Shown: positions 23,372 through 51,370 of the stretch, one piece after another
How positions within the stretch are numbered: the first letter of the stretch is position 1
Layout of the letters: every line of letters begins with the position of its first letter
Assembly: GCA_025558095.1 (NCBI GenBank)
Contig: JAIVFI010000042.1
Span: forward strand, 62,001 to 126,000
Direction: 5' to 3'
DNA from: Hyaloraphidium curvatum SAG 235-1
Taxonomy: Eukaryota > Fungi > Monoblepharomycota
DNA: 64,000 bases
Program-made: the position numbers and the translations under genes
The notes under the pieces: generated by a model
What the model was told of the DNA's origin: nothing
Seen by the model: the letters and a program-made list of their open reading frames with translations, nothing else
Databases searched by the model: none

Positions 23372-25157
23372 ATGGCGGTGGCGTCCAAAGGTGCTGCGCC
23401 CGGCGACGCGCCCCCGGAGGACTTCTCGGACGCCGAGTGGCTCGCTCTCTTCCCGGCGCCCGGCAAGGTCCCCGAAGCCCTCTCCGGCCAGCCGGCTCCT
23501 CCGGACCGCGCCGCGGAGCTAAGGGAGCTGCGCCCGCTTAGCGCTAAATCCATGGCTTCAATCCTCCGGGCCAAGAGCGCGCCGCTCGCGCTGCTGTTTC
23601 GGCTGCACCGGGTGGCGACGCCGTGGGGCCGGTACCTATTCGAGATGATGGCCATGCTATCCCTTTTGAGCGTTGCGACCTGGGTGGTTTTCTGGCTTCT
23701 GTACGTGCAAGGAGGTTTCGGGCGCACACAGGCCATCGTAGCGACGGTTACAGCACTTCTGCTGATCATTCGGGCCGGACTGTGGAACTTTCTGCTGGTT
23801 GCCTACGTTTCCACCTTTAACCCGGAAGACGGCGGAAGAAGCAGGCCGGGAAGGGACAGGTTGCGGGACGGGAGGAGGAGGACGTTTCCAACTCCTCTGC
23901 TCCGCTTAGTCTGTCGCTGGACTCGCATGCTCTCGCGGGCCTCGTCCGCTGGCTGGAGCTAAGTTCTGGATATTCATATGGATCAGCAGTGTCACTAGAC
24001 GCCCTGGAGAATGGTCGTGCAGCGGACCACGGCCCTTCTGGACTGCTTCTGGCGCACAACGCGTCAGACGCCCTCTGCCCGTGTCCATTGGCGGGCTGCG
24101 CTGGATCTGTCGCCCGCCGGGCAGCGATGCTGCGCACCCTAGAAGTCTTTGCCAGGGCAGTGGGCCACTTTGTGTTGATGGCTTCGGTCTGTTGGACCGT
24201 GCTCGTTGGCAGCGAGACCTGGCGAACCTGGTGGGCCGCCATGGTGGTCGTCCTTCTAGGTGAGCGCTTGGGCACCGGCTGCTCATGGAAACTGACTTGT
24301 CCTGATCCGCAGTAACGCTACTCATTTCTCTCGTGTTTATCATGCAGCTTGGCCGCTTCTCGACGAACGTGGCGCTCCTGGAGCTTTCCCAGCGAATGCA
24401 ACACCGCGCAGTACGCCCGGCGCTCTCGTCGCTCCTCAACCACCTTCGCCGTGCTGCACTCGAGGGTCCTGTAGCCGATGGTGGCGCCCACAGCGAACCC
24501 TGTGCCTCGGAAACCGCAAAGGACGGGGCGATCGCCCCCGGCTCCCCACCAGGACAGCTGTACATCGAACTGCATCAACATTTGGCCGTCGCCTGGCGGT
24601 TTCGCATCTCCAATACCAACTTTAGCTCCCCGCTCTTCGTTACAGCTGGAATAGCCATCCTCTGCGCGGTAGCGAACATTGTGAGTCGCTCCCTGCTTTA
24701 TTCTGAACCTTTATAACGGACGCATTTGGTGCCGGGCCTCGCATTCGACAAGATCGCGGGAAACTGCATCCCTTGGATGTTTCTCTTCGCAGTCGGGTAC
24801 TACGCCCTCCTCCTCTCCATCGACCTCGTCAACTTTGCCGCCGCCAACAGCTCCGTCCAATGCGTACGAGACCTGTACACGCAAGCGCGCCTCGAGATTC
24901 GCTGCATCCTGGCAAACCCGCTCCTAACCGACCCGCATGGCCCGCGAGCGGCCGCGGCGTCGGAGCTGCGTGCACACGATGCCGTTCTGGGCTCTCTCAG
25001 AGAGATGGATGCTTACCGCGCGCGACTACTGGGGTTCGTCATCACGTATGGGGTGCTGCGGATGGCGTTCGTCACCGTCTGCACTGTACTGCTGGGGGTG
25101 TGGTCGACCCTGAGGGCGCAGGGGACCTACGTCACGCTCGAAATGTCCTGTAGGTGA
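23372..25157 (+). CDS. Putative 7TM ion-channel (GRL-like) family paralog A; introns about 23860-23909, 24260-24312, 24681-24752
   Basis: Family motifs EWLALFP, LAGLVRWLEL, HNASDALCPCPLAGC, LHQHLAVAW, IAGNCIP, LLGFVITYGVLR..GVWSTLR..MSC. Confidence 0.75.
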
Positions 25158-25223
25158 CCGACAATGGAAAGAGATTCGTCTGGCTGCGAAACTACTAGCA
25201 GCACTCTATTCTCGGGCGTCCGC

Positions 25224-26852
25224 TTATTGACAAGCCACGTCCATCGAGATGCCCACCCCGACCCCTCTGAGCAACGTCCAGAGGCCCAAGCACACCGTCA
25301 CAGCGGTCGCAAAAGTGGTCCTGGCGACGCCGTAATCCACGGGCACACCGGCCAGCTTGGCCTTTTCTACGCCAGCGGCGGCAGCAAACCCGCGCAGCAC
25401 GCTTGCATGGCCTGCAATCCTCCCGCGCACTTCCGCAGGTATGTCCCAGGAAAGCAACTCTTCTAGCTCCGAGGCGGCTTGGGAATGCAGGGCGGAAATG
25501 GCCGACATCTCGCTATTTGAGGCTGCGGCCGTGAGGAGGTGCGAGAACAGAACTCCGAGGATGGCCGCAAGGACGATGATGTAGGCGACAGGAACGCAGG
25601 ATCCGGCAATCTATCCGACCGAAGCTCCGATCAGGTCATCGGGCTTCAATTGCGGGGAGTGAGCGAACCCACCGCATTCACGACGGCTCCGGCAAGGTAG
25701 GTGAAGAAGGACATCATGTATGCCCGCTGGAGCTTCGAGACATCGTACCGCTGCTTCCAGCTCGAGGAGATCAGGATGTCCATAACAACGTAAGGTTGTC
25801 GCTCTCCCGGCACCTTATGAACGCACAAATCACCATCTCCCAGCGCCGCAGCCCGAAGCATGGAGACAGTGTCTTCCAACGCAAGCTGCGTAGCACGGTG
25901 ATTCAGGCGCAGCGAAAGGCCAACCATCGGTCGGACAAAGCTGGCCGAAGCCACGAGTGACATGGCTACAATGGAAAGAACTGCAAAGCGGGTAATGTGC
26001 TTGAGCTCAAAGACCTGCTGGTCCAAGAACGAGTGACTCACGGGAGCCGACAACGAAGAATATGGCCCAAGGTGATTGTGCCACTGCAGAGCGCAGTGTC
26101 ACCAGAGGTGTCCACAAGAATCCTGGCATTGCCTGCGCCATCCAAATGCAGCAGAGAGTGCCGTCCGTTAGTAACTTGCCGGCGGCAAATCTAGCCGGAA
26201 CCGCGCCAGCGCAGGAGCGAGCCGCGCATGGACAGCACTCGTCGGCCGGGTCGTGTTGAAGGAACTTGGAAATTGCCGTATCCGACTGACCCTCTTCGAC
26301 AAGCTGCGACCAGCGCACCAACTGCGCCAAGGGAGACGTGTTCAATAATGCTTGCATGTCCTCCTTTGTTGGCTTGTACAATAGCTTCACCCCCGCAAGA
26401 TAGCGAAGGAAAAGGTTGTGGCAAACGAATGAGAAGATCAAGGCCGCTGTCCCTGCGGCAAGCTGAGGAGTCCGAAAGACATCGTCGCCATCAAGTAGCC
26501 ATGCCGGAAGGATGGTAGCCAGGACCGTGAACACCGCCGCCGCCAAGATCAAAAACGCCAGAATAGCCAACCCAGGCGCCAGGAATCCACTGGTGCGCAC
26601 CAGGAATACCAGCAGAGGCCAAGGGCGCGCAGCAGCGACGAACTGAGCGGGCGTCAAGGGCAATGCCGACCTCAGAGAGGATGCTGGGTCGGCGAGTTGG
26701 GGCGCAGCAAACGGGCGAGGGGGAGATGCGGGGAAAGGCAGGAGGGCGAGCCAGACGCGCGCCGGGAACAGCGGTGGCGGCGCCCCGTGTTCCTCAGAAT
26801 GTTCTTCAATGCTAGCGCTATTCAGAGCTTTCCGCGGGAAGTACGGGTCCAT
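25224..26852 (-). CDS. Putative 7TM ion-channel (GRL-like) family paralog B; introns 25981-26041 and 25611-25672
   Basis: VWLALLP, LVRWSQL, HDPADECCPCAARSC, IAGSCVP, LAGVPVDYGVAR..GLWTLLRG..VAC. Confidence 0.75.
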
Positions 26853-26963
26853 TCCTCGACTCGGCGAAGTGGTCAACAGGAGCCCGGGGTCTAGCGTGGC
26901 TGGAGCTGCCTTCCGAAAGGAACACCTGTCGCGCGGGCTACCTCCTCTTTTCGAAGCGAAAGA

Positions 26964-27918
26964 CTACAAGCGGGGCCGAATCCTGTATCCGCCGTCCAAT
27001 CGAATCACCTCCCCGTTGAGATACTTGCTCTCGAGGATCGTACATATCATCGACGCGTACTCTGCAGCCAACAACAGTCAGATGAGCTCGGAGAGCAAGA
27101 ACATGGGCTGCCAGACCCACCGTCGGGGTCTCCGAACCGTTTGGGCCAGACCATATCTTCCAGCATCCCGTCTTTCACTCGCTGAGGCTGGGTCCGGAAC
27201 AGCGGGGTGTCGAAGGTCCCCGGCGCGATCGCGTTGGCGCGGATCCCGAAGGCCGCGAGGTCGCGGGCGAGGGGAAGGACCATAGCAATGGTGCCGCCTT
27301 TGGCCGCGTCGTACTTTGGGTTCGCGTGAGTTCGTTGTTGCTCTCGAAGTCGTGCGGTAACGAAACGACCTACCGAGATCATTCGGGGCTGGCCGTCGTA
27401 GCCCGCTATGGAGGCCGTGAGGACAATTGCTCCACGCTCCCCGTCCTTCCCGTCGGCCGGCGTTGTCTTGGCCATGATAGACGCGACGAGGCGCGAGACG
27501 ATGAACTGCCGAAGGACGCGTTCAAATGACCAAAGTCGCATCTCGGCCGCAAAGAACTCACGCTGCCTGTCAGGTTGATCCGCAAATCCCTGTCAAAGTT
27601 CTGCACGCTGAGGCCGAAGTCCCCGTTTGCCTTCAGCACGGGCCCTGGCGTCCCGAGACCGGCGCAGCAAATCGCCCCGCGGAGGTGCCAGCCCTCTCCG
27701 GCAACCGTCTCCAGGCCCTTCCGCAGCATCGTGTCGACATTCTGCTCGTCGGTCACGTCGCAGCGCCCCGGGTAGCACGCCGAGTCCGGCAGGGTCGGCG
27801 GCGCGTTGACGTCCAAGATGACGACCCGGGCGCCGCGCCGGAGGAGCAGGGTGACGGTAGCAAGACCGAGGCCCGATGAACCACCGGTCACGACCAAGAT
27901 GGAGCCCGGGTACTTCAT
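26964..27918 (-). CDS. SDR, 3-hydroxyacyl-CoA dehydrogenase type-2 (HSD17B10-like), multi-exon
   Basis: VVTGGSSGLG, ICCAG, ERGAIVLTASIAGYDGQ, YDAAKGG, LPLARDLA, IAPGTFDTP, YLNGEVIRLDGG. Confidence 0.9.
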
Positions 27919-28154
27919 TCTGACAAACGGGAGACAGTTCCTCACTTCTGAGAACCGCTGTTTCGCGCGCCCCGCGCCGCCGGGTAGAGTCCGCAGACGA
28001 CCAGAGGGAAGAAACCATGATGCAGTCCATCAAGGGAAGCAACCATAAATGTAGTCCATCGTCGATTACTTTCATGTGATGGATTTTGTTGGTCGCGGTG
28101 CCCTCCACCCTGAAAGTCTGAGGCTTTTTCGTGCAACCGACTCACTGAAGGGTC

Positions 28155-29465
28155 GTGAAACAGTCCGCCCCGGCCGCCAGCGACCTCGCGCGCCGCAGCG
28201 CTTCCCCATCCCACACACTCCGACAGCTCCTGCGGCGGGTCTCGCTCGCGGAGCTCAAGACGCACGTGGGGCTGCAGGGGTTCCTGCGCGACTCGGTGGC
28301 CGACGTGCTCGGCAGGCCCAAGCACGAACTCGTGAAGGAGCTCGCCGGCGTGGGCCACTTCGGCTTCGCGCTGCAGGAGTTTATGCTGGTCGGGTTCTGC
28401 GAAGCGGCGCGGTCGATCGGGCTCGAGTTCCTGTGCAACAAGGAGCTGGGCCGTGCCGTGCGCAAGGAGGACCCCGGTGCGGAGCGCAGGTTCCACGTCG
28501 AAGGGGCCGAGCGCGCGTGGCGCCTGGTGGCGCAGCTCGCTGAGCTTGAGACGCTGAAAGTGCGGATCGGCGTGAGAGAATGTCCCGGACCGGACGACGA
28601 CGATTGGGAGTTCGAGCAAGATTTGGTCGAGGACGAAATTGTCGCCGGCCCCGTGTGGACCGGCCCGCCTTCTTTTCCCGGCGGCTTTAGCGGCTTCGAT
28701 GAGGAGGTCTTCGAGACCTACTACACCCCCGTCTTTGCCTGGCCGGAAGATCTCTCGTTTCGGCCCCACAAGCTTAAGAAGGTCGTGATTGAGCTGCAGA
28801 GCTTGCCGCGGGGTGGTCTTGCCCATCCCCTCGACCAGGGCCCTGTCTCCGAGTTCTTCCAAGCGCTGAACACCATTGCCCCTGAATCACTCTCCTTCGA
28901 CATGAACCCTGCGAGTCTGGATCTCAACCGATACCCCCAGCTTTCCCAGGTTCTCGATCGCATGATCGTGCCGAGCAATTCCGTGTGGTACCTCCAGAAG
29001 CAGGGCATGCGGCCGAGGCGCCTCATCGTGACGCGGCCCGAGAACGTTTTTGGGAAGCTCGCGGGCTTCGACTGCAAAGCCATTGCCAGGCAAACCGGAG
29101 TCAAGGAGCTCGTCTTGGACAGCGCGACGACGGTGGAGCTGATGAGCTGCCTGCCGCCGAACGGCTTGGAGGTCCTGGAGCTCGATTGTCCTCGGCTCGG
29201 GAAGCTGAAGCAGGAAAACTGGGACACCATGGTGGCGGCCATTCGGGCCTGTGGTGTTCGAGAGGTCTTTGTTTCGCCATGGCCTGGCTACCTGGGAAAG
29301 TGCCCCGAGGAAGCCGTCGCCTGGCTCTGCCTGCGCCTCGATCCGGAGTGGAAAGGCAAGATCGGTTTGCTTGGGGACGAGTGGGTGACGGATGAGATGC
29401 TTGCTGCCCTGAAGGAGAAAGATCCGGTTGCGGCGAAGAAGCTGGACCCGGAGGACGGCGAGTGA
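28155..29465 (+). CDS. Hypothetical protein, possibly degenerate LRR/RNI-like; start uncertain
   Basis: 436-codon ORF with coding-like composition and LxxLxL repeats (LKKVVIEL, VKELVLD, LEVLELD, VREVFV). Confidence 0.5.
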   Translation: MKQSAPAASDLARRSASPSHTLRQLLRRVSLAELKTHVGLQGFLRDSVADVLGRPKHELVKELAGVGHFGFALQEFMLVGFCEAARSIGLEFLCNKELGRAVRKEDPGAERRFHVEGAERAWRLVAQLAELETLKVRIGVRECPGPDDDDWEFEQDLVEDEIVAGPVWTGPPSFPGGFSGFDEEVFETYYTPVFAWPEDLSFRPHKLKKVVIELQSLPRGGLAHPLDQGPVSEFFQALNTIAPESLSFDMNPASLDLNRYPQLSQVLDRMIVPSNSVWYLQKQGMRPRRLIVTRPENVFGKLAGFDCKAIARQTGVKELVLDSATTVELMSCLPPNGLEVLELDCPRLGKLKQENWDTMVAAIRACGVREVFVSPWPGYLGKCPEEAVAWLCLRLDPEWKGKIGLLGDEWVTDEMLAALKEKDPVAAKKLDPEDGE

Positions 29466-29897
29466 AGATTGGCTGGTGGATTGGTGGTCATTTGCTTCGG
29501 TCAATCTTCTCCAGTTGCAGTTGGCTCGAGTTAGTTGCATTTCTTGTCTGGAAGCGCATTTTGAACTTCTTTGCTGTAGAATCTTGCTCAGTACGGCTCA
29601 TGTAGGACCGTCGCAACTGCTTTCGAGGCTTTCGAGTCTTTCGAGGTCCCTCTGTTGATGCAACAGGGCACTGTCTTCGACCCGCCCGCCCTGCGCAATC
29701 CAAACCGCCGACCGCCACCACCTGCTCGACCAGAAAGTCAAGCATTTGATGCTCATCTGGGATGTGGGACGCGAGTGATGGACCGCTCTTGGCGGCGCGT
29801 AAACACGCGACGACGCCGCGGTGACATCAGGGACACGCACACACCGACAGGGACGCGCCGGCGCTGTTTCCTCTTCACGGAGCGCTTTCCTGGATAA

Positions 29898-30821: not shown

Positions 30822-30975
30822 CTTATCTCAGATTGCCTGAGGCTCTTTTCGAAGTAGAAGGGTGAAAAGATTCAGCGTCAGTCGTCATCGAGACACCCGC
30901 GCCTGCGTGGGCCGGCGTCTCCCACTTCCCAAAGGGCACTGTGCTGCTCGTCACGGCCGCGACGCGCTCTCCACG

Positions 30976-32469
30976 ATGGACGAGGCCACGCTGCCCACGC
31001 TGAAAGGCCCGGACGACCGCGCGGACCACCCTCCGGCCGAGGTGTGGTTGGCGCTGCTGCCCGCCCCCACAACGCCCGCGGAACGGCTGTCCGCCGACGA
31101 GGCCGAGGCGCTGGCGGAAAGAGACCCGGCCAAAGAGGCCCGCGACGCACGCCCGCTTTCTCGTCGGGACTTTTTGCGCGCCCTCGCCGCCTCGCCCGTG
31201 CACCGCGTGCTGTTTGCGCTGGAGCCGTTCGTGCCCTTCTTGAACGGCCGGCTGGTGCTCCGTTTCTTTCTGGGCTTGCCCCTCATGCTGCTGCCGTACC
31301 TCTGCATCGGGGAAATGTTCGACTCTGGTGTCTTCCACGCCCGCGGCATCGCGACGGGCCTGGCAGCGCTCACGCTCATCTCTTTGATCCATTCCGTCAC
31401 CATGGCGGGAGCTGTTCGCGGAAACTGGGTGGTCTGGCAGCAGCTGGACAAGCACTCGTTCGCCGGATATGTGCGGTGGAGCCAGTTGTGCGATGCCGTC
31501 GACGTGTCGCGCGATGCCGAGGCGGGAGACGCAGCAGTCGCCCCGTGGATAAGGCACGAGGATGGAGACCTTCTGTGCCCCTGCCCGGCACCTTCCTGTG
31601 CTGGTCGGACCATCTCCAAGTCTGCAGTTCTGCAGGTTCTTTCTGCAATCAATCCTGCTCTCTTTGGCACTTTCACCTGGGGTGTTCTCAGCAACTGGAC
31701 GTTTGTCGTGTTCCTCGCCGGCTCGACATGGTCCAACCCCGGCAAGGTCTTCGTAGTCGTCTGGGGGCTCGTCGCGTTGTTTGCAATGAATGTGACGCTC
31801 TTGTTCGAAGTTGTCGCCAGTGACGTTGCTCTGGTCAACCTCGAGGCGAGGGTTCGCAACCGGGCCCTGCGAATTGCGCTCGCCGGACTGGTATCGCGAT
31901 GTACGGTGTCCTCGGCCGGGACCGATGCCCCATTTTCGTGGCCGCGCATTGAACCCTACATTTCCGTGCACCTTGGTTTGGTACCCGCGTGGCGCTCGAC
32001 CAGAATCATCGCGGAATCCGCCGTCAGGATGCTTGCGCTACTAGTACTCGCCATGTGCATAATCGGGCTCATCCCACTCATCGGATCGGGGTGCGTGCCG
32101 TCCTACATCATTGTCGCCGTCGGGCTCTACATCGTCATGGTGTTGCGCTACCTCACCGACGCCGTGGCCGCCAACGCCGGCGTGGCCTCCGCCGGCGAGC
32201 TCTACCGCCGCGCGCGGAGCTCCCTCTCGCTCCTGCTCACCTTGTACCCGGCGGCGCCCGAAGCGGCGCGCATCAGGGCGCACGAGGCCGTGCTGGCGCG
32301 GTTCGAGGCCGCCGCCGCCGGGGACCTTGCAAAGATGTTTGGGTTCGTGGTGGACCTGGCGCTCGTGAGGGGCTTCGTCGCCACGGGGCTGACGGTGGGC
32401 GTCGGGCTGTTTGGTATCCTCCGGGGTGCGGGCGCAACGGCAACTCTGCAGTCAGTGTGCCCGATCTGA
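30976..32469 (+). CDS. Putative 7TM ion-channel (GRL-like) family paralog C, intronless
   Basis: VWLALLP, YVRWSQL, HEDGDLLCPCPAPSC, PYISVHLGLVPAW, GSGCVP, MFGFVVDLALVR..GLFGILRG..SVCP. Confidence 0.8.
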   Translation: MDEATLPTLKGPDDRADHPPAEVWLALLPAPTTPAERLSADEAEALAERDPAKEARDARPLSRRDFLRALAASPVHRVLFALEPFVPFLNGRLVLRFFLGLPLMLLPYLCIGEMFDSGVFHARGIATGLAALTLISLIHSVTMAGAVRGNWVVWQQLDKHSFAGYVRWSQLCDAVDVSRDAEAGDAAVAPWIRHEDGDLLCPCPAPSCAGRTISKSAVLQVLSAINPALFGTFTWGVLSNWTFVVFLAGSTWSNPGKVFVVVWGLVALFAMNVTLLFEVVASDVALVNLEARVRNRALRIALAGLVSRCTVSSAGTDAPFSWPRIEPYISVHLGLVPAWRSTRIIAESAVRMLALLVLAMCIIGLIPLIGSGCVPSYIIVAVGLYIVMVLRYLTDAVAANAGVASAGELYRRARSSLSLLLTLYPAAPEAARIRAHEAVLARFEAAAAGDLAKMFGFVVDLALVRGFVATGLTVGVGLFGILRGAGATATLQSVCPI

Positions 32470-34661: not shown

Positions 34662-34798
34662 GAAGGGCGCACTGAATGTAGATGTTGATTGAGCAAATAC
34701 CCGCGGGAACACACTGCCGCACCGCGAGGGCAGGAACCTGGCAACTAAACTGGGAATCAAAAGAATGGTCTGAGCAAACCGGGTAGCGCCGTCAGCCG

Positions 34799-36261
34799 TC
34801 AGCGCAACGGGCACACAGAGTCCATGGTGAAGAACACGCCGCTCCCCCGCAGCACCGACCACAGCGCCACGAGTACCGTGAGCATGGTCACCAGCATCGC
34901 ACGGACGACGCCGAAATCCACCGCGAACCCGAGGTACTTTGCCCTCGCCGCGTCGTCGGCGGCGGCAAAGACGCCGAGCAGCGTGGCGTGGTCGCTGATC
35001 CGCCGGTGCAGGTCCGCGCGGTCTACGGGGACGACGGTGGCGAGCACGGCGAGCTCCTGGCCCGCCCAGCGGGACAGCGCCGCGGCGGCAGCGGTGCGCA
35101 GGTTGGCGCAGGCCGTGGTGACGGTGATGATCAGGAGAAAGCCGGTGACCCAGGCGAGCGTGAAGACCTGCAGCGAGAGGATGCAGTTGCCGACAGCGAC
35201 CGTGATCACGACGAAAACGACCAGCAGTGCGGCAACTAGGAGGAGGAACCACTTGTCAGCGAGCTCCTTGCGCGGGTTGGCCCACACCGCTTGAAGAAGC
35301 GGGTGGAGCACGGCGTAATCTTCGTGCTCTCCGGTGGCGGCGCCGTCCTCCCGGATCCGGCGGAAGAGGTCCGCGAGGGCGATCTGCATCGCACGGTGCT
35401 GGACACGGCAGTCCAGAAAGGAGAGGAAGGGGTTGGGAAACAGGGTTTCGCAGCTGGCGTGGGTCAGCAGCGGCCACGACACGATGGAAATAACCGTGAC
35501 TGCGCCGAACCGAAAAGGCAGCCCCACCAGGTGGACCAGAGCTGGGTCCCAAAGGTGACCAGCGTGGTCCAACAGAAGGAAACGGTGGTCAGCACGAGGA
35601 GGCTGTGGCCGGCGACCGAGTCGATCAGGGCGAACCACGAGGCCTTGCGCGCCGTCCCGCCGGCACACGCGGGACCGGGGCAGGAGCAGTACTGGTCCTC
35701 TTCCACGTGCGTGAGGAGGCCCAGCCTGCCCGGGGCCGCCCCGCGGCCCTCGTCCCCCTTTTGCGAGGCCGCGAGCTGCAGCCAGCGGGCCAGGGCGCCC
35801 AGCCGGTGGGCCGAGAAATCCACGAGGGTCTTCCTGAAGAGTCCGGAACTGCACTCGATCTGCTGCCGGATGTCCGGGAACAGAAAAGGCGCCACGGCGC
35901 CTCCGAAGTAGAACATGACCGTCCACCCGAGGCTGGCCGCGATCTGCGCGGTACCAAACGTGCCGTCGTTGAAGAGGAACACGAGGCCGAAGGCGGTGAC
36001 CGTGCAGCACGCGGCGACACCGTTGATGAGGGGCTGCAGCGTGGTCACCGGTGCCAGGAAATCCTCGACACGGAGCACGTATTGCATCGCGGGCAGCGCG
36101 CGCATCGCGGAGATGAGCTCGCCGCGGGAAAGGGGCGCGCTGGGCAGCACCGGCGCGGGCGTCAGGTCGGCGCCGGGCACCAGGCTCCGTGGCCGAGGCG
36201 GGGAAGGGAACACAGCGACCAGCTCGGCGTCCGTGAGGCCGAGCGGGAGCGGCGCAGACAT
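34799..36261 (-). pseudogene. Putative 7TM ion-channel (GRL-like) family paralog D, frameshifted by a 5-bp duplication at 35505-35514 (or an assembly error)
   Basis: ELVAVFP, LARWLQL, YCSCPGPAC in one frame; LHPLLQAVW, VGNC, YLGFAVDFGVVR..ALWSVLRG..SVCP in another. Removing one TTCGG joins them. Confidence 0.7.
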
Positions 36262-36346
36262 TGCGGCGCGACTGGAACGCGGCAATCCGCGTGTTGTGAG
36301 GAGCTACTTGGGAGCTACAATATATGCGCTCCTCAGAAACCCCGAA

Positions 36347-39247: not shown

Positions 39248-39272
39248 TTACTCGAACATATCCCGGTACATT

Positions 39273-42200
39273 CTACGGGATGTAACACGTGAAGGTGATT
39301 GAGAGGTGCTTCGTGGAGCCATTGCACATATCGGGGAGGCCGACGGTCGTGACATCGCAGGTGTTCTTGCCGGCGCAATTGAGGAACTGCTCCGCGTTAC
39401 GGTAGGCGAACTGGACCGGGCTTGGCTGGCAGTCCCGCATTGGCCCCACGCGGCACTTCTGGTCCCCCGCTGAGCCCGGATACCGACCAAACTGCGAACC
39501 ACGGCGAACGAGTAAGCCCAAGCGGGCACAAGTAGCCAAGGCCTGCGAAGAACCCACAAGGACCTGCACGATGGAGATGGCCTGTCCGGCAGGGCATCGA
39601 ATTGTATCCCTCCGGCTGCCTTCCGCATCGCAGACGTGCAGCTCGGCCGGCGGGGTGGTTGAAACCTGCTCGTACTGCTTGGGGTAGCCCCCAATGACGT
39701 TGCTGGTCTGCACGGTGTAGGCGTTTGGGATTCGCACAGCCTCGCAGGTCGCCATCATGCACATCCCAGAGAAGATGTCGCCGCTGGAAGGAATAATCCA
39801 AGAGATCGCCTTGTGCGGTACCGCTGATCAGTTTTCGTCCCCATCCGTCGTTGGGGGCACTCACCCTGCACTTCTCCGGGCCCCCGTTGTTGTTGAAGCC
39901 CAGGCATAGCTGCTGGCAGTACTCGTAGGTCGCGGCTATGCCAAGGTTATAGCAAACGCCGCAGGAACAAACACCCGTCCTGAACAATGGCACTGCGGTC
40001 GCAGATTACGCCCAAATCAACCGACGGAGGCGGCCGATCCTCTCAAAACTCACGCGGAAAGACGTAGGGGAAGTAGTGCACGGCAATTTGCTTGCCGTTT
40101 GCGTCGACGGCACCGGGATCCAGCCGGACGAACGCGTCCCTGAACTTCTTGTAGCCGCTCATGTGCACTTCCGGTTTGCTCGGCAGCATGGCGTCGTAGC
40201 GCCATTTGGCGTTGCTGACGGTTTCGATGTTGGCGGCGCGGCCGGTGCACAGCATGCTAAAGACACCGTTGCCCTGAGGCACCCAAGTGTACGCCCAGCA
40301 GACCGTATCCGCCTCGCAAAGGGCGCGGCATTTCTCTTCGGACATCACGGACCCGTACTGCGGGGAAATGGCGGCCAAGTTAGCCAGCACACCGGAATCC
40401 TCGGCCAACCCACGTTGTAGACGCCCTTTTGCCCCTCCCACACCTTTATGTCGTTCGGCGACGTGATCAAGTAGGCCGTCAAGCACCATCCCGGCAAAAG
40501 AACCCAGTCGTCGAAACCACTTGGTGGCGAAGGCGGGAACGCCTTGGCGTGGTCGGCCGCCCACGCGTCCACCTGGGACCTCAGCGCCGAGGGCAGGAGC
40601 CCGTGGACGGGCACGAATGCGTCCAAGGCGGTGACGGCCCAACGCAGCGGCCCTTCGTCCACCGACCGTGCCCATTCGCCGAACCCGGCGAGGGAGCCCG
40701 TGGCGTCGATGGCGCCTGAAACAAGGGACGAGGTTCCGCCGACGGCGGTCCAGCGGCTGTTTTGGAGTGAGCTCGAGAACGAAGAAGAAGAGCTGGACGA
40801 GTCGCCTTTGCCGACGCCCACGCTGGCGCCGGCCCTGCCGAGGCTGACGCTGACCTCGGCCGAGATCTCCCTCGACGCCGACTGGGCGGAGCTGGCGGAC
40901 ATTGCCGAGAGGTCGAAGGTGGTCGTGAGCTTGCCGCCGAGCTCGACCTTGGTGGGGAACACGTGGCCCCAGTTCTCCTGGAGTGCCCGGTACCGCCTGA
41001 ACCTCTCGACGTTGGTGATCTGCTGCGTGACGAGGTCTTGCACCTCGGCGACGAATGCCGGGTTCACGACAAAAGGCGACCTTGCCCCGTTCGGATCGAG
41101 CTGGAGTACGAGGCGCTTGACCCTCCAGTTTGCCACCGCCTTCGTGCTCGACCGCGACGAGCTCGAGGACGAGCTTTGCGACTCGGAGTAGCTGACACTG
41201 GCGCTGACAAAGCCGTATGAGGCGCTGACGCTAGTGTCGAGGAAGCCGGACTGCGCCATCGACGCCTGCTGCTCGCTGGACGATACGCTGGCGTCCGCTT
41301 CCGAGGTGCGGAAGGTGGTGTAGTCGGGGTCGGGGAACGGGCCCGAGGTCCGGGGCACCAGGATCGCTCTGCTCATGCCGATCGATTGCGTCGGATCCCT
41401 TCGGGTCGGGTTCAAAATCCATCTGCGGAGAGTCAGACCCCGCGCGCTCGGACGAAGACGGAAGCACTGACGCATTGAAGATCGAGTTCCGCCTGAAGAG
41501 CTGCTCCCACTGGGACGCACAGAGGTCCGCGGCCGACTCTGGTCGGTCCGGGCATTCTGGCACGGCCGGCGGCGGGGGCGGCGGAGGAGGCGGCGGGGGT
41601 ACCGAGGGCGCCGGCGGGCCCGGAGGCGGTGGGGGTGCCGGCGGGGCGTTGGCCGGGTTCACAATTGCTCGCTGCATGGTCGCGCCGTCCACGATATTCG
41701 GCCCGGCGGCGTAGGTGATGTAAAAGAAGCGCCCGATCATGTTGTTGCTTATCGGGATGCGGTGCGTGAAGCGGTAGCCCCTAGTGGGGACCCCGGCGCC
41801 CTGGCACGCCCCATGGATGGCCGCGCTGTCGGCAGAGGGCATATTCGCGTCCGTCGTGAAGATGGGTCTGGGGTCCACCATGCCCGCGAAAACGGCCTTG
41901 GTTCCGTAGGTGACCCTGACGAGCCCTGGTGTGGGTCCATTGGTGCAGGCCCAGCCCCTAACGAAGACCTCCGAGCCCTCTTGTCGCAGGTCGTCGACCA
42001 TGCCGCGCGGCTGCCTGTTCTCCAGGCTCCGCAGCATCGCGGATCCACGGCCGCTGTATCCGTTGGCCTTGAGCAGCTCCCGCTTGTTCATCCGCACGGC
42101 CGAGACCACGGATTCGCGGGGATCCAGGGCGTAGACAAAGACCTCCACTTCGGCCTTGCCAGCGTCGGAGAAGAGCTTCGAGACCGTGTCCACCGGGAGT

Positions 42201-44311
42201 AGGACCGTAAACCACGCCGAGACTGCCGAATTGCCGCACACTTTGTGGACATCGGCCTCGGCCTTGGCGTCCGGGTTCCTGTTCGCCGTCACGGCGTTCC
42301 CGAGGAAGCCCGTCGAGTCCGCCGAACCCTGCACCCAGATCGTCACCGCACTGGACGACCCCGTCAAGCACGCCCATCCGTCCACGCGAGCCGCTCCGTC
42401 AGTGACCACGGTCCCCGTGACGGCGCCGAGCAGCTTGGTGGACGACTGCTCGACCAAGATCCTCTGCGCCACGTCCCGCGGGTTCTGCGCCGGCGGCGGG
42501 TCCGGCATGCAGCGGTACCAGATGCGGAGGTATGGTTTGCCGCGGTCGCATTCGGGCGGCTCGCCGGGCGAGGCGGCCTGCGCGGGGGTGAGGTTGATGC
42601 CGCAGCTGATCTTGCCCTGGCACCTGGACTGCACGGTCGGCAGCGCCGAGTTGTCGTTGCCGCACACGGGCTCCGAGGTCGCGTCCTCCGCGTCCTTGGG
42701 GCCGAGGCACCTGGATGCCGACCCGGGGTGCCGCCCCAGCGTCGCGCGGTCGATCGCAAGGCTGGTCCCTGCGCACTCGAGCTTGGTCTTGAAGTTCCCC
42801 TTGCGGTTCGGGCACACCGTGACCACCCTCGCCGAATCGGGGTTGGTCCCCACGCTGCGCTTGCACGTGTAGGCCACCTCGAGGTACGCCTTTCGGCCCT
42901 TGCAGCTGCGCATGGAGGGCACGAGCTCGCGCACGCCGGCGGTGCAGTCCTCGAGGCCGTGGCACGCGGCGCGCACCCGCGCGAGCACGGTGGCGGTCTC
43001 GTCGGCGCCGATGGAGCACTGCAGCATGCGCACCACGGGGAGGCGGCGGAAGGAGGCGAGGGCGGAGAAGTCGGCGGGGGTCTGGTTCTCCTCCTCGTCC
43101 GAAGAATCGTCGTCCTCCGAGTCGCCGTCGCCCGAATCATCATCTCCCGAATCATCGTCTCCCGAATCGTCGTCGTCGGCCGCTTCCTCTTCCTCTTCCT
43201 CCTCCTCCTCATCCTCCTCGGGCGGGGGCGGCGGCGGCCTGCCCTTGACCCCCTTGGGCGTGGTCTTCCTCCGCACGAGCCGCTTCCTGGCCAGCATCCT
43301 CCTCGCCCTGACCGCCCTGATCGCCCTCCTCCTCTCCTCCACCGCCTTCGAATCGCACTTGTCCCCGAACCTGCCCGAGCCGTAGCGCACCGACGCGATC
43401 TCCATCACGCCGCTGCCCTCGCACCCGAGGGAGAGGTACCCGTTGTCGGAGCAGGTGATGGAGGTGTACTGCCGCTCCGGTGGGGGGCGCTTGAAGAACT
43501 TCTTGCGGCCCTTGGGGCCGGCGGGGGGAGGGACCACGGCCACGAGGGAGGGGACCAGCTCGGCGCCGTGGTCCTCGCCGCTGTCGTCGTCGTCGTCGTC
43601 GTCCCCGCCAGATCCGGAATCGTCGTCATCGTCGCCGTCCCCTCCTCCTCCTTCTGCGTTGTCGTCGCTCTTGCCGCCCTTTGCGTCTCCCTTGCCCCCG
43701 TCCTCCTTTTCCTCCTCGTCGTCGTCGCCCTCCTTCTCCTCCTCGTCCCCCTTGAGCTGCCTAAAGTCCGGCACCGGGTCAGGGGGCGGCGGCGGCGACG
43801 GGGGGTTGGGAAGCAGCCCAATGCCGCCGCCCCCCATAGGCAGTTTGGGGAAGAAGAAACCCGTCCCGCCCGTCCCGCCCACCCCTCCGCCGAGCGACAT
43901 CTGCCCGCCGCCGCCGCCGCCGAACGGTCCAACACCCGAAGCGGATCCGGATCCGGAGTCGGTGCCCTTGCCCTTGTTGTTCTTCTTGTTGATGATGTCG
44001 GTCTTTGTATTGATGCCGCTGCCGCCGGTCTTGGTGCCGCCGCCGCCAGTCTTGGTCCCGCCGCCGCCGTTCTTCGGCAGCTTCGGCGGCGGGGGCGGCG
44101 GGGCCGGCGGCCTCTTCTTCAGGCCCGACCCGCCGCCGCCCGCCAAGTTGCCGAGGCCGCCGGGGAGCCGGCGCCGCGCGAGCCGGTCCCGCGGCGCGCC
44201 CGACGCGTTGCACGCCATCCGCCCGTCCGCCGCCGCGGGCCGCGAGAGCGCGACAGCCGCGGCGGCGAGCAGCGCCAGGAGGAGCACGAGGGCGCGCGTC
44301 GGGGGCGCCAT
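39273..44311 (-). CDS. Large secreted MACPF-domain protein with SUEL (rhamnose/galactose-binding) lectin domains, two GWAC repeats and PAN/apple-like modules, multi-exon
   Basis: Signal peptide MAPPTRALVLLLALL; Cys patterns of three SUEL-like domains; MACPF signature WGHVFPTKVELGG plus WTAVGG..WARSV; PAN-like CRALCEADTVCWAYTW. Confidence 0.8.
43100..44075 (-). repeat. Coding low-complexity repeats in the MACPF gene (GGGGTKT repeats, DDSGD repeats, poly-E/D/P)
   Basis: Repeated ccgccgcc(g/a)gtcttggt units near 44020-44070 and cccgaatc(a/g)tc units near 43130-43175. Confidence 0.7.
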
Positions 44312-44681
44312 CGCGGTCACAGGTTGTAGGCGGCCCGTGGGTGGGTCAGGACCCGTCGATGCCTCGCCATGCCTTCTAAGGTGGCTGGTGCCTTCCGCCT
44401 TGCCGCCGCTATCGGGCGTTCGGAAGCAGGAAGAGGAGGTCGGAATCGCCGGTCGTTCATTCGCAAAGCCCGAGTACATCATTTCGGAGTTGCGCCGGAG
44501 GAGGGGGGCACAGCACAGAGCCCAGCCGACGTTGCGACACACCGCCCTTCGCGGCCGCGATCTCCTGCCGCAGCTTCTTCCTTTCCGGGGAATCCATCGT
44601 TCCCGCGGATCGGTTCCCCCGGATGGAAACAGGGCCCCGCGAAAGTGCTCCGGCGGACCAAGGTCCCGCACGCCGCATCCA

Positions 44682-45440: not shown

Positions 45441-45709
45441 GGCTTCGGCCTCCCGTGGGGCGGTTTCGGGTCGTGCCGATGAATCCCGAGGCAATGTAGA
45501 TAGAAAGCCCCGCGGCACGAGATGAGGGCGTTGAAGGCCTGCGGTAGAACGCTGCACGTTCGCGGCGCGCGGCGGGAAAATGGTCCTGACATCGCCCCAC
45601 CCGGGACGACAGCGGATATTCCGGACACGGGTATTCAGAGGCAGGCAAACAAAGATATCTATTGGTCGATTACTAGCATACTAGTTGCTTTGGGGTGGAT
45701 CCGCGGCCC

Positions 45710-46556
45710 TCATCGCCGCCTGGTGGTGGTCCGCCGCTTGGTGGTGCTTTTCCGGCGGGAGCTCGACCTCCGCCTCGTCGTGGTTCCCCGCCGAGACGTC
45801 GTCGCGCGCTTCCTCGAGGTGGTCTGGGGGAAGTACCGGTTCGGGGAGGAGGCTGGGGAGAGGAGACACCTATCAGCCTCCAAGTCCAGATCAGCATCGG
45901 GCAGGAGGGGAACCCACAGAGCGACGAGCAGGTGAGCAGGCTCGAGGCGTTGGTGATGTCGTCCGCGGCGCAGACCCTCGTCGACGTCTCGCAGAACCCG
46001 AGCATGCCCTGCCCCGGCCCCGGGTACAAGGCGACGATGGCCTGGTACACGTCACGCGGGGAGGGGCGTGGGGGGCAGGAGGAGCCCCAGTAGGAGAGCT
46101 GGAAGGCAGTGTGCGGCCCTAGAAAGGGGGAGATTATGTCAGGGGGCCAGTGATCGTGGATCAGTGTCGGGCAAGCTCACATGTGAAGAAGGCCGAGGGC
46201 ACCGAGCTCCCGAGGAACCAGCCGATGATCCCGTCGACGACGGGCAGCGCCGCCATCCCCGCCGGCCGGGCCTCGCACCAGATCTTCCTGCTCCCGCCGG
46301 TGTCGGTCCCGCCGCACTCGGCGGCCGCCATCGAGCCCATCGGCACGGCCGTGCCGTCGCGCTCGCACGAGTCGGAGAACTCGATGCGGGAAGTGAAGCC
46401 GGCGGCGGTCGACGGGGCGGGGCAGCCGGGGGTGGTCCACTCGAGGGACTTGACGAGGAAGCCGGCGGTGCGCGACGGGGCGGCGGAGGTGCGCGCGCAA
46501 AGGGCGAGGAGGGCGAGGGCGAGGAGCGCCGCGCGGGGGAGGGCGGGAGGTGCCAT
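45710..46556 (-). CDS. Small secreted Cys-rich protein with a Thr/Arg-rich basic C-terminal tail, 2 introns
   Basis: Signal peptide MAPPALPRAALLALALLALC. Predicted spliced tail TTSRKRATTSRRGTTTRRRSSSRRKSTTKRRTTTRRR. Confidence 0.6.
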
Positions 46557-46832
46557 CGCGAATGCCGGGGTTGTCTGCGGTTTCCTCGCTGATGCTGCCT
46601 TGGATTGAGCCGCGGCTCGTTGAAATAGTTCCCGCGGAAAGTTCGAGCGGTTGAATCGTCAGGCGGTTGCGGTTCGGAAAGATCCCTACCGCATCCACCT
46701 CGACGTCATAAAGCGGTCGGCGGCTAAAGCTGGACCGCAAGCCGCACACAGCCTGCGCAACAAATAGGAAAGCCAGGTTCCGAGTGAGAAGGGCCGCACA
46801 GCGAATCGTCTCCAATCCGACCCAGCAACGCC

Positions 46833-49581
46833 ATGGCTCGCCTCGCCGTCCTCTGCGCGCTGCTGTTTGCGCTGCTCGCGGCCCCCCTCCGCGCCCCGCA
46901 CTCGTCCGCGGTCGGCTTCCCGCTCGCGGCCGCCGCGGCGCTGCCTGCCGAGGCCCATCCCGCCGGGATTCGCTCCGGCGACCGCGATGCCCCCGACGCG
47001 CCCCGCCTCGACGCCCGCCAGCTCGTGCTCAAAAAGACGACGACCCGCCGCTTGCCCAAGAAGACCACAACCCGGAAGCGCCGAACGACGTCTCGCCGCC
47101 GCGCCTCCACCAAGCGCCCGCAAACAACCGCCCGCCCGGCTGCCCGCAACACCACGTCGTGGCTGCTGATCCAGGAAGACCTGCGCGCCGGCAGGCTCTC
47201 GCAGCCCGTGGCCGCGCTGTACCGCGCCTTTGCCGAGTTCGGCGACCCCCTCCTGCCGGCCAAGTACCGCGTGCCCGTCTCCTCGGTGCCCCGCGAGGAC
47301 GCGTCGACCCGCGATGCCCTGGTCGGCCTGCTGGCCGCGTACTCCCGCCTCTCGGCGGCGCAGCGCGCCCAGGCCGACCCGTACTTCATGCCGCCCATGC
47401 ACGGCCGCTCGTGGTGGCAGCGCAGGTTCGCGCCGGGGTCGGCCGGCGGCAGCAGGCCCTCGCGGCTGCGCGCGCGCTCGGACCACCACGGCCAGCCGGC
47501 CGGCACCGCCGCCGCGGGGCTTTCCAAGCGGCAGGCACCCACTGATCCTCTGGATCCCACGTTGATGCTGCGCGAGTGGGACTCGTGGGCCTCGCTGGAC
47601 GGCAACGCCCGGGTCTGGTATCAGGCAAGTGCCCTCCCGTGGTTCTGCTTGCAGCTTGTCGCTCATCCAGCATGCCTCAGGTCCGCTACGAGTCCACCGA
47701 CCGCGCCCTCGCCCTCCGGATGGCCAACGAGATCCCCCGCATCTGGGCCGCGCACCGCCGCCTCCTCGGCCGCGTTCCCAAGAACGACTTTGGCTCCCGC
47801 AACTCGGGCCGCGGCGGGGACGACCGCCTCGACATCGCCCTCGTCGACGCCAACTCGTACGTCCTCCCCTACGGCCGCTCCTGCACCAGCGACTCCCCCG
47901 CCTACGTGGGCTTCAACCGCGCCGCCCCAAGCTGGAAGGACGAGCTCGCGCACGAGCTCTTCCACGCGTTCCAGTACGCCTTCCGCGTCAGGACCAACTG
48001 CATCGCCATCGACTACGCCTGGCTGCAGGAGAGCACGGCGCAGTGGGCCATGGACTACGTGTACCCGCGGAATGCGGACCAGCACCGCGCCGCCAAGTTC
48101 TGGATGGACTCGCCGCACATGAGCCTGGACGACGAGTCGGCAGCGGGGACCGGCCGGCGATGTGGGTCTCTGCCGGATCACCGCTGCCTGCTGATCTCGA
48201 GCTGACCTTGTCCCTTGTCGCGGCAGACGGAGGGTATATCGTCTGGCACTACGCCGCCCAGGTCCTCCGCGACCCCTCGCGCATCCTCCACGTCTGGCTG
48301 CAGGCCGCCACCAAGGACCAGCTCCCCGCCGTCGACGCCGTCTTCCCCGGCGGCCTGCGCAAGCACTGGCCCCTGATTGCCCTGCACAGCTTCAACAAGG
48401 GCACCCTGAACCACCTCGCCGAGCGCGGCCTGGCCCGCGGGCCGGCGGTGTTTGGCGGGGGCACCGCGCCGATCGACCTCACCCTCGAAGGGGCCAACGT
48501 GTACGCCCCCGAGCTCCAGATCGACCTGCCCTACTTGTCGGCGACCTACGTGCACATGCGCGTCAACGACACGGCGCTGCGCGGGTTCACTTGGTACAAC
48601 TCGCACCGCTTCGCCCTCGACAGAAAGACCGTCGCGGTCAACGTCTTCGGCGCGCCGTACGACGCGCTGGTGTTCGAGGGCAGGGGCTACACTTCCCGCA
48701 CGAGGGGCGTGGCGATCTGGGCGGTGTGGCGGCTGCAGGGCAAAACGACGTGGGAGCGGCCCGAGGAGTGGACCGACGTGCCGTTCCGGCGGTTCTGCCT
48801 GGACAAGCGCGGGGAGCGGCTGGCCGAGATCGCGGTCGTCTACGCCAACTCGGAGTTTGCGGACAAGAGCTACCGCACGACCAAGCTCGGGTCGGTCGGG
48901 CCGACGGTGATCATGTCGGACATGTTCTGCCACGCCGCCAAGGGCACGTCCAAGGTCACCGCGACCTGGAACGGCGGCAGCTGGGTCGCCGACGCCTCTG
49001 CGCTCTCCTTCGAAACCACCCCGTCCGTCGGCAACGGCGGCTCGGGCACCGACTCGCTGTCGACGTACAAGACGCTCTACACCGAGGGCGTCTCGCAGCC
49101 CCCCGCCGACTGCAACATCACCATCCCCGGCACGCAGCAGATCGACTTTGGCGCCTGCCTGCCGTACATGATCGCCCCCACGAGGTTCTTCCCCGCCGCG
49201 GGGACCGTCGCCGTCGTCGCCAGCGGCACGACCAGCTGCGACCCCTCGCCGCCCGAGACGGCGATCTCCACCGCGGCAGGGACGTTCGCGGCCACCGACA
49301 ACGGGCTCACGTACCTGGACCTCCTCGACTCGTCGCTCTCGGGCCCCGCGCACAGGTCGTACGTCGGCTCCGCCCTGGACACCTCGGAGGGCTCGGTGGT
49401 GGTGCACAACGGGTGCACGGGGCTGGACGAGCCCACCGTGGGCGGGCCGTACCTGCTGACGGCCAGGTCCAACGGGCGGGCGCAGGCGCTGCAGGGGGAG
49501 GGGGGGAAGGGGGTGGAGGGGTCGACGCAGCTGACGGAGGGGAGCTTCGTGTGGAAGCTGCAGAGCGAGAGGGAGGCATAG
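46833..49581 (+). CDS. Secreted zinc metalloprotease (HExxH, bacterial DUF6055/MXAN_6640-like), 2 introns
   Basis: Signal peptide; GGDDRLDIALVD; ELAHELFHAFQY followed by WLQESTAQWAMDYVYP (third-ligand Glu); beta-rich C-terminus. Confidence 0.78.
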
Positions 49582-49786
49582 ACGGGGGGCGATCGCGGCG
49601 GTTGTGCGACACGCCCCAACCCGGATCGGCGCTCGGCGGGATGTGAAAAACAGATCGGTACATTCTATGTTTTTTCTCTCCGTAGCGTGACGATCTCCTG
49701 ATTCCGGGGTCGGTCGCAAGGCCCGCCAGCCCCGGCTCGAGAGCACCCTCGAAGGAACCGTGCGGGTGCCGCTATACGACACATCC

Positions 49787-51370
49787 ATGGAGATCCGCGG
49801 AACAGACGCCGCGTCGATCCCTCTGATCCCGCAGCAATTCCCCGGATCCTTCACGCCCACAGAATGGGCCGCCCTCTTCCCGGGCACCGCGGGCCCCATG
49901 AGTGACCTTGCCCCCCAACCGCAGCCACTCACGCGTGCAGCGCTCCTGCAAACCCTTCCAAACTCACTCGCCGCAGCCGCACGCGTGCAACTCTACCTCG
50001 GCCGACTGTACATCAACTTCATGGTCTTTCTCGTCGTCTTTGAGGCCGTGCCCATCACGGGGCTGCAGGGGACCGTGTTTGCGTTTGGAGCAGACCAGTT
50101 TCCGGCAAAGCAACGTGCCGTGGATGTTTCCATGGTCATCTTGTATCTCGTTGCCGTGCCGGTCATGTACTACCTGCTTGTCGTGTTTGCGACGGATCCT
50201 GCAAAGTTGATGTCGACCTCGGACTTGCAGTGGGGTCGCAGCAAGACACAGAGGGACCTTGCTGCCATTCAACTCGTTGAAAGTGTCTCGGGTGGGATTG
50301 AGACGGACCGAACGCCAACCGGCACCAAAGCCAAAGCAAGTACGGACCCGCAAAACGACCAAGAGCCAACCATGGACTCGTACGATCTTGCAGGTATTGC
50401 TCGCTACCTTCAGCTCGCCCGTACCGAGCCAGACTCTGCACTGCTGGCCCACGACGGCTCTGATTTATGCCCGTGCCCGGCTCGCTCCTGCGTCGGTGGA
50501 CTCATTCGTCACGCGGGGCCTTTACGGTTTCTCGAAATGATTGGAAGAGGGTCACTGGACAGCTCTTGCTGGTTCTTTATGGTTTACACGCCGCTGGTTT
50601 CGCTCGCGGCGCGCACCTGGACGACGCCCTGGTCAGCCTTCTTTGCAGCCATGGCTGTCGCATTGGGCCCTCTTCTTTACAGTTTCCCCACGTCTTTTTC
50701 GATTCCCAGCTTTGGTATTCCATCCATGGAGCTCACGAGACGCCTCTACGGGCGCGCCGTGGGCCTGTCGCTCGCGCACTTTCTCGAAAAGCGCGAGCAC
50801 GCCCTGGTCGCAGGCGAAACCATCACATCGACACAGGAACCTGTACATATCGCGCTCCACCGTCAGTTGGCAGTAGACTGGAACTCGCGCGCGAAAGTCC
50901 TCGGCCGCGGCAAGCTGTACCTCGGTACCCTTATTGCTCTGGACTTTGTGTGCGCGCTCGCATACATTGTCGCATCGGGATGCCTACCCGTATGGCTTAT
51001 TTGCTTTACTGCACTGCACCTCCTGGACGTTATCCGCGCCCTCTTTATCGCCGCGGCATCCAATGCCGCCGTTGTCGACGTCTCCCGTGAATACCTACTC
51101 TGCAAAACCCGGATCCAGGAGTTCCTTGCAACAGAGGATCCGACACAGCTACCGTCACCTGGATGCATGTCGCTGGCCGCCAACGAGAGGCTGCTGACTT
51201 CGTTTGCGGATGTGGACTTGTACCGCGGGTCGTTTGTTGGGGTTCGGGTGAGCTATGCGTCGGCAAGAGGGTTCCTGGCGGCGACGTTTACGGTGTTTGT
51301 GGGATTGTGGACGGTATTGCGGGGGTTTGGGATTCCGGTGACGGCCGACAGTGTTTGCCGCGGTCCATAA
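49787..51370 (+). CDS. Putative 7TM ion-channel (GRL-like) family paralog E, intronless
   Basis: EWAALFP, IARYLQL, HDGSDLCPCPARSC, LHRQLAVDW, ASGCLP, FVGVRVSYASAR..GLWTVLRG..SVC. Confidence 0.8.
   Translation: MEIRGTDAASIPLIPQQFPGSFTPTEWAALFPGTAGPMSDLAPQPQPLTRAALLQTLPNSLAAAARVQLYLGRLYINFMVFLVVFEAVPITGLQGTVFAFGADQFPAKQRAVDVSMVILYLVAVPVMYYLLVVFATDPAKLMSTSDLQWGRSKTQRDLAAIQLVESVSGGIETDRTPTGTKAKASTDPQNDQEPTMDSYDLAGIARYLQLARTEPDSALLAHDGSDLCPCPARSCVGGLIRHAGPLRFLEMIGRGSLDSSCWFFMVYTPLVSLAARTWTTPWSAFFAAMAVALGPLLYSFPTSFSIPSFGIPSMELTRRLYGRAVGLSLAHFLEKREHALVAGETITSTQEPVHIALHRQLAVDWNSRAKVLGRGKLYLGTLIALDFVCALAYIVASGCLPVWLICFTALHLLDVIRALFIAAASNAAVVDVSREYLLCKTRIQEFLATEDPTQLPSPGCMSLAANERLLTSFADVDLYRGSFVGVRVSYASARGFLAATFTVFVGLWTVLRGFGIPVTADSVCRGP

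Follow-up and report, generated by a model that had tools for sequence, protein, structure and literature searches.

Background

Seven-transmembrane ion channels (7TMICs) form a superfamily whose branches are known to lack mutual sequence similarity and whose hallmarks are structural: an extended fourth transmembrane segment (TM4), long TM5 and TM6 and a split TM7 (Benton et al. 2023, PMC9998090). The described systems closest to the genes reported here are the odorant and gustatory receptors (OR/GR) of insects, the gustatory receptor-like (GRL) proteins of unicellular eukaryotes, including chytrids, the plant DUF3537 proteins and the PHTF-like (Class-B) proteins; animal GRLs also belong to the superfamily. 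In this study, five genes (g1 to g5) from a 64-kb stretch of Hyaloraphidium curvatum DNA (contig 42, bases 62001-126000; called the window below) were analyzed and compared with these systems.

The 7TMICs of organisms other than animals and plants were reported at one to six copies per genome, and those reported from fungi were single genes, each from one of two Spizellomyces species (PMC7746228). The chytrid proteins were missed in the structural screens of 2023 (bioRxiv 10.1101/2023.08.30.555482), and in later screens the 7TMICs of 'Fungi' came only from Chytridiomycota and Blastocladiomycota. In the literature searched, no link between Hyaloraphidium and the 7TMIC superfamily was found.

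As H. curvatum is placed in the Monoblepharomycota, it is an early-diverging fungus, which a preliminary description of the window, made from the DNA letters alone, had deduced correctly. We propose, with a probability of roughly 0.6, that the family of g1 to g5 is a lineage-specific repertoire of proteins with the 7TMIC fold, which probably act as ligand-gated chemosensing channels.

Results and discussion

Conserved motifs and predicted topology

When the window was searched with a profile built from 25 paralogs, exactly five family genes were found, at the positions where the preliminary description had placed five paralogs, and tblastn with g3 and g5 agreed. The genes share 27-37 % identity when compared exon by exon. 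The ordered motifs that had been noticed are present in all five: W-x-A-L-x-P (as a variant in g4), R-W/Y-x-x-L, H-x(5-6)-C-x-C-x4-C-x-G, L-H-x2-L-x3-W, G-x-C-x-P, A-x-x-N, G-F/V-x-V-x5-R, L-R-G-x-G and a C-terminal Cys. These motifs also make up the consensus of alignments of 25 and 109 sequences, and E-W-L-A-L-F-P and D-P-A..R..P-L-T are found in an N-terminal stretch of about 90 aa that is likewise conserved.

Only four columns of the 109-sequence alignment are strictly invariant: a His and three Cys (H-x(5-6)-C-x-C-x4-C; His/Cys3 below) of the TM2-TM3 loop. In g3 this motif reads H194-x6-C201-x-C203-x4-C208-x-G210 (31555-31605, + strand). Conservation reaches 90 % or more at, among others, R167 and D198 (numbered as in g3), at R292, R296 and A297 in the extension of TM4, at C373 in the TM5-TM6 loop, at N400 at the end of TM6, at G456, R465, T473, R483 and G486, and at C495 in the C-terminal tail. 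At the outer end of TM7b, the second half of TM7, R483 is an almost invariant Arg.

Hydropathy of the 25-sequence alignment gave seven hydrophobic segments, with which the helices of both AlphaFold2 models (see below) agree. This number and the highest conservation at the C-terminus had both been predicted, and TM7 and the C-terminus indeed scored highest. The long loop expected after TM4 exists, and there are further long loops after TM2 and TM6: the mean lengths of intracellular loops (IL) 1, 2 and 3 are 64, 71 and 64 aa, and those of extracellular loops (EL) 1, 2 and 3 are 6, 9 and 5 aa. The mean Lys+Arg count is 23.4 in IL1-3 versus 1.9 in EL1-3 plus the C-terminal tail, with the same direction in 109 out of 109 sequences. 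By the positive-inside rule, the one basis of this assignment, the N-terminus and the long loops are predicted to be intracellular, in agreement with the inverted topology suggested earlier.

Such a topology would put the His/Cys3 motif on the cytosolic side, where it is most naturally read as a zinc site, and C373 and C495 outside. The motif is a candidate site for zinc or another metal; in the AlphaFold2 model of g3 its region has a predicted local distance difference test (pLDDT) score of 91-94 and is free of regular secondary structure. An extracellular C373-C495 disulfide is plausible, and the pairing of a short strand at 373-375 with a strand at 488-490 in the AlphaFold2 models is consistent with it.

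Predicted fold

The g3 protein was modelled by AlphaFold2 from the 25-paralog alignment with a pLDDT of 89.4 and a predicted template modelling score (pTM) of 0.87, and the g5 protein, 25 % identical to it, from 109 sequences with values of 87.1 and 0.86. According to the secondary-structure strings of the models, g3 has an extended TM4 (helices H255-278 and H284-313), TM5 (H327-371), TM6 (H376-423) and a TM7 that is split into TM7a (H430-449) and TM7b (H461-484); the pattern in g5 is equivalent. Helices H284-313, H327-371 and H376-423 project past the membrane in the g3 model. TM7b (residues 461-484; 32356-32427, + strand) is the best-conserved transmembrane helix and the equivalent of the pore-lining helix of insect OR/GR. 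As modelled, the family has seven transmembrane segments, a predicted intracellular N-terminus, intracellular loops longer than the extracellular ones, long TM4-6 and a split TM7, which are the structural characters of 7TMICs.

When the models were compared with the PDB using Foldseek, the matches were led by BmGr9, AaegOR10, AgamOR28, Gr64a, Gr43a and MhOR5 with high 'prob' values, at weak E-values (best 9.5e-3) and TM-scores of 0.26-0.41. All eight OR/GR representatives topped the unbiased structure search for both models, no other membrane-protein fold did so, and the alignments were collinear over 300-350 residues. No G protein-coupled receptor (GPCR) was among the top 50 structural matches, and transporters in Foldseek reached a prob of at most 0.10. 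The resemblance to insect GR/OR channels that the preliminary description had proposed was therefore recovered with both models; a GPCR or transporter match, an N-out topology and a helix number other than seven, which it had named as grounds for giving up the comparison, were not observed. In the ESM Atlas, searched by shape with g3, a cnidarian cluster (TM-scores 0.58/0.70), a chlorophyte cluster and plant DUF3537 (0.53/0.59 over 348 residues) were matched. The language-model feature match to DUF3537 was 0.92. There was no PHTF-type cluster among the Atlas matches.

Giant-virus proteins were also seen in the structure searches. In BFVD, g3 weakly matched the structures of uncharacterised ~440-aa proteins (Edafosvirus, E-value 0.022 and prob 0.99; Catovirus; Yasminevirus), and one ESM Atlas cluster (TM-scores 0.54/0.63) was partly from Nucleocytoviricota. 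These may be viral 7TMIC-like proteins.

Absence of sequence links and the question of convergence

The TM7b consensus of the family is T-x-L-T-V-x-V-G-L-W/F-x-x-L-R-G, and only its Thr (T473, 98 %) fits the TM7 motif of GR and GRL proteins, (T/S)Yhhhhh(Q/K/E)(F/L/M) (Benton et al. 2020, PMC7746228). The preliminary description had cited G-F/Y-x-[LVI]-D as an established 7TMIC motif. This could not be confirmed; PMC7746228 names only the motif given above.

Several results weigh against a chemosensing channel family of the 7TMIC fold. None of the 25 members had a match in Pfam, where GR and GRL proteins are covered by 7tm_7, 7tm_6 and Trehalose_recp, even at an E-value of 10 or less, and the profile search of the PDB returned nothing relevant. 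Neither the 7tm_7 (PF08395) nor the DUF3537 (PF12056) profile matched anything in the H. curvatum genome, and the control genomes were silent too for both. In a four-copy prediction of g3 residues 281-497, made without the paralog alignment, the chain itself folded poorly, which is evidence neither way. An almost invariant Arg of the R483 type is not known from the cation-selective insect channels. Finally, H. curvatum is non-motile and has no swimming stage, so that classical chemotaxis is not an obvious use for such receptors.

It could be argued from the missing sequence similarity that an unrelated seven-helix bundle has converged on the packing of OR/GR, in which case no mechanism would be transferable. 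However, the branches of the superfamily lack such similarity anyway. Two models with 25 % identity were both led by all eight OR/GR representatives in collinear alignments, the split TM7 and the extended TM4-6 were reproduced, and DUF3537 was matched independently in a different library. We regard convergence as quite improbable. It is because no sequence method ties the family to 7tm_7, 7tm_6 or DUF3537 that its placement depends on the fold: on the basis of the models, the family can be filed in the structure-defined 7TMIC superfamily and in no sequence-defined family.

Family size and distribution

The genome searched was the 31.9-Mb, 55-contig assembly of H. curvatum. The expectation of many more copies than the five in the window was borne out by three approaches. 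A genome search with one query gave 89 scored matches of 684 first-look candidates. Among 1.84 billion representative proteins searched with a profile, 452 clusters had an E-value of 1e-3 or lower (403 one of 1e-10 or lower and 272 one of 1e-30 or lower), and 29 of 30 sampled clusters were hypothetical proteins of H. curvatum. At the DNA level, the motif C-P-C-x4-C-x-G was found 288 times in the genome versus 33 for the reversed control, and H-x(5-7)-C-x-C-x4-C-x-G 387 times versus 50 for its control, with a few double counts. The genome contains at least about 320-340 loci with the signature, and the family probably totals 330-450 members.

The family to which g1 to g5 belong is probably specific to the Hyaloraphidium lineage. 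One representative protein (P0046) lies on a 14.8-kb contig of 54 % G+C from the Logan assembly of run SRR26194948. This contig matches H. curvatum DNA at 69-93 % over about 1.5 kb (query 6734-8264) and at 67 % over 206 nt (882-1087), and is otherwise unmatched; therefore, the family is present in at least one further, presumably related organism. Two tandem members lie on this contig (L031:2163-5656), both of them broken at profile position ~250, which is an intron position of g1 and g2; the genes beside them showed no informative domain. Metagenome scans with a subfamily alignment and with P0046 found no relatives, and the full alignment offered no stretch of sufficient conservation for such a scan. 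A word-indexed protein search lacks the sensitivity that a family of this kind demands: no more than three H. curvatum proteins came back with g3 or with the alignment, and P0046 retrieved only itself.

Comparison with described systems

Insect OR/GR (Orco, MhOR5, AaegOR10, AgamOR28, BmGr9, Gr43a and Gr64a; 7tm_6 and 7tm_7) show no sequence similarity to the fungal family, in which their TM7 motif is not conserved. Unlike them, the fungal family has an invariant His/Cys3 motif in IL1, the conserved N-terminal region of about 90 aa, a Cys pair formed by EL3 and the C-terminal tail, and an Arg at the outer end of TM7b. Its host is unicellular and non-flagellated, and its channel role is predicted.

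The chytrid proteins SpunGRL1 and SpalGRL1 (PMC7746228) resemble the family in coming from early-diverging fungi and in length, seven TM segments, an intracellular N-terminus, intracellular loops longer than extracellular ones and a largely degenerate TM7 motif. However, they are single-copy and were found by their similarity to animal GRLs, whereas the H. curvatum family counts hundreds of members, for which a sequence link was not detected. In the case of plant DUF3537, which among named families was matched best by shape in the ESM Atlas, the profile matches nothing in the genome; DUF3537 families in plants have 4-12 members (PMC7746228), and an IL1 Cys motif is not described for them in the literature consulted. 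The PHTF-like 7TMICs have the core fold and an elaborated IL1 (TM2-TM3) in common with the family. However, their IL1 is far longer and they are conserved low-copy genes, while the H. curvatum family is hugely expanded and its IL1 has about 64 aa.

Evolution of the family

Information content was lowest in TM1-TM6 (1.27-1.49 bits) and highest in EL3 (2.83), TM7b (2.63), the C-terminal tail (2.39) and the hairpin before TM7b (2.27). For pairs of young duplicates with 68-94 % amino acid identity, the ratio of nonsynonymous to synonymous substitution rates (dN/dS) was 0.25-0.36 when calculated for the whole gene or its first 360-390 codons, and lower, at 0.12-0.27, in the TM6-TM7 exon. Because these values range from 0.12 to 0.36, the family genes are under purifying selection, which is strongest at the C-terminus. 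With a variable TM1-6 and a conserved TM7b, the conservation pattern resembles that of a receptor repertoire.

Family copies often occur in local arrays or inverted pairs. Young paralogs of 68-94 % amino acid identity form local arrays and a head-to-head pair at L034, L035 and L036 (contig 1, 702-719 kb) and L037 (contig 14, 38-42 kb); the contig 1 genes have an intron where the last intron of g1 and g2 sits (profile position ~360). Near the end of contig 10 (~808-814 kb), two truncated copies (L032:1351-2082 and L033:2116-2847) cover profile positions 8-214 only. They are inverted, 100 % identical in DNA and separated by a TTCGG microsatellite (contig 10: 811103-811191), which looks like a very recent palindromic duplication. 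The local arrays, inverted pairs and truncated copies, together with a frameshifted copy (g4, see below), point to birth-and-death evolution.

Gene models of the five members

The preliminary description had listed five genes of about 480-530 aa. Its account needs correction for three of them: g1 has three predicted introns, g2 has two and the open reading frame (ORF) of g4 is not intact. The other two, g3 and g5, are uninterrupted.

The g1 gene (23372-25157, + strand; 536 aa) has four exons (23372-23859, 23910-24259, 24313-24680 and 24753-25157), which the profile matches exon by exon. Its predicted introns of 50, 53 and 72 nt have the splice sites GTTGCG..TTAG, GTGAGC..CTGAC..CAG and GTGAGT..AAG, and their removal restores the frame and the profile alignment. 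The last exon is 100 % identical in the public partial model P0146, by which g1 is only partly represented. The g2 gene (25224-26852, - strand; 501 aa) has three exons (26852-26042, 25980-25673 and 25610-25224), and removal of its introns of 61 and 62 nt likewise restores frame and alignment. Exons 1 and 3 are 100 % identical to the public protein P0059, also of 501 aa, which was used as the complete g2 product in the alignments. All introns of both genes are GT..AG, one with a CTGAC branch site and another with a pyrimidine tract. The two genes lie tail-to-tail and have two intron positions and phases in common, yet their identity is just 29-31 %.

The intronless genes are g3 (30976-32469, + strand; 497 aa) and g5 (49787-51370, + strand; 527 aa). 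The g5 product is identical to the public protein P0015, and its IL1 contains an extra disordered segment of about 60 aa. For g3 and g4, no identical public protein was present among the sequences returned.

The g4 gene (34799-36261, - strand) has one frame break between an open N-terminal part (36261-35512) and an equally open C-terminal part (35497-34802). The break coincides with a 5-bp tandem duplication, TTCGG-TTCGG (35505-35514, - strand), and falls at profile position ~250, where g1, g2 and both L031 genes have an intron. It is likely that g4 is a young pseudogene; otherwise, the break is an assembly error. Two copies of the 10-mer TTCGGTTCGG are present in the window, at 18897-18906 and at the g4 break, versus 0.26 expected. 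In the whole genome 122 copies, some of them within TTCGG microsatellites or dispersed repeats, were counted versus 65 for the control. As this is only about twice the control and partly due to such repeats, the excess is probably chance.

The closest relative of each of the five genes lies outside the five, and they are old, dispersed paralogs among unrelated genes. Transposon or segmental-duplication origin was considered for g1 to g5 and rejected, because no DNA-level repeats linking or flanking them were found.

The G+C content of the window is 60-71 %, which yields many spurious long ORFs, and seven helices is also the number of GPCRs. Nevertheless, the explanation that the genes are GPCRs or transporters, or spurious ORFs in the form of high-GC artefacts or transposon cargo, is highly improbable. 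The structure searches were free of GPCRs in the top 50 and gave transporters a negligible prob, and the N-terminus is predicted to be inside. Canonical short introns restore the frames, dN/dS is 0.12-0.36, public gene models match g2 and g5, and flanking or shared repeats were not found.

Proposed mechanism and other possible roles

The family, its size, its motifs, its purifying selection and its predicted fold are supported directly. By analogy with Orco, MhOR5 and BmGr9, we propose an assembly of subunits, probably a tetramer, that is held together by a cytosolic anchor; the extended TM4, TM5 and TM6 together with TM7a would form this anchor. At the centre, a pore would be lined by the conserved TM7b and gated when the fast-evolving TM1-TM6 bundle of each subunit binds a small ligand. 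The repertoire would then consist of ligand-gated channels that sense the chemical environment. Two additions may be specific to the family: a cytosolic His-Cys-Cys-Cys metal (zinc) site in IL1, and an extracellular disulfide between the C-terminal tail and the TM5-TM6 loop. What we infer is thus that the proteins oligomerise, conduct ions, are gated by ligands, bind metal and form the disulfide. The patterns of conservation and selection fit the ligand-gated channel model.

Proteins with the 7TMIC fold might instead serve another diversifying role: they could discriminate self from non-self, recognise viruses or partners, mediate metal- or redox-regulated transport, or act in internal membranes as suspected for PHTF-type proteins. 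Immune-like recognition families typically also have hundreds of fast-evolving copies, the giant-virus proteins are weak structural matches, and the host is non-motile. In the 7TMIC literature consulted, nothing corresponds to the invariant His/Cys3 motif or to the conserved Arg at the pore mouth, and neither is known from OR/GR. Function is moreover untested for nearly all non-insect 7TMICs (PMC9998090). However, a variable TM1-6 with a conserved TM7b and anchor is the pattern expected of ligand-gated channels of the OR/GR type. An IL1 of only ~64 aa is unlike the very long IL1 of PHTF, and the best Atlas matches were DUF3537 and the cnidarian cluster and not PHTF. We consider such other roles rather unlikely.

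Returning to the ligand-gated channel model, the conserved TM7b Arg and the His/Cys3 site suggest properties unlike those of insect channels, for example in selectivity or in metal or redox regulation. A more specific proposal can be offered tentatively: a non-motile unicellular fungus may have independently built several hundred ligand-gated channels of the OR/GR type, with a cytosolic His/Cys3 metal site that could couple gating to zinc or redox state.

Neighbouring genes

Other genes in the window were noted in passing. Upstream of the family genes are a tubulin-tyrosine-ligase family ORF (11185-13200, - strand), a histidine kinase ORF with HisKA and HATPase_c domains (13623-15287, + strand) and a zinc-type alcohol dehydrogenase ORF (21959-23131, + strand), which ends ~240 bp before g1. 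A very long ORF (41231-44671, - strand) contains a SUEL-type galactose/rhamnose-binding lectin domain and, at 43092-43218, acidic Ser/Pro-rich low-complexity repeats with a 15-nt period. Directly downstream of g5 are genes for an ankyrin-repeat protein (51590-52969, + strand) and for a RING-finger and von Willebrand A protein (53094-55238, - strand).

Conclusions

A family size of several hundred is so far known only from animals. If the proposed reading is true, H. curvatum would have the largest 7TMIC repertoire outside animals, with 330-450 members under purifying selection, a variable pocket region and a conserved pore helix, and large 7TMIC chemoreceptor repertoires would not be an animal invention. 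As a culturable microbe in which the genes are mostly intronless, it would allow tests of ligand gating in a non-animal 7TMIC, of what is sensed and of how a repertoire expands. The His/Cys3 motif and the Cys pair would provide mutable handles for structure-function work.

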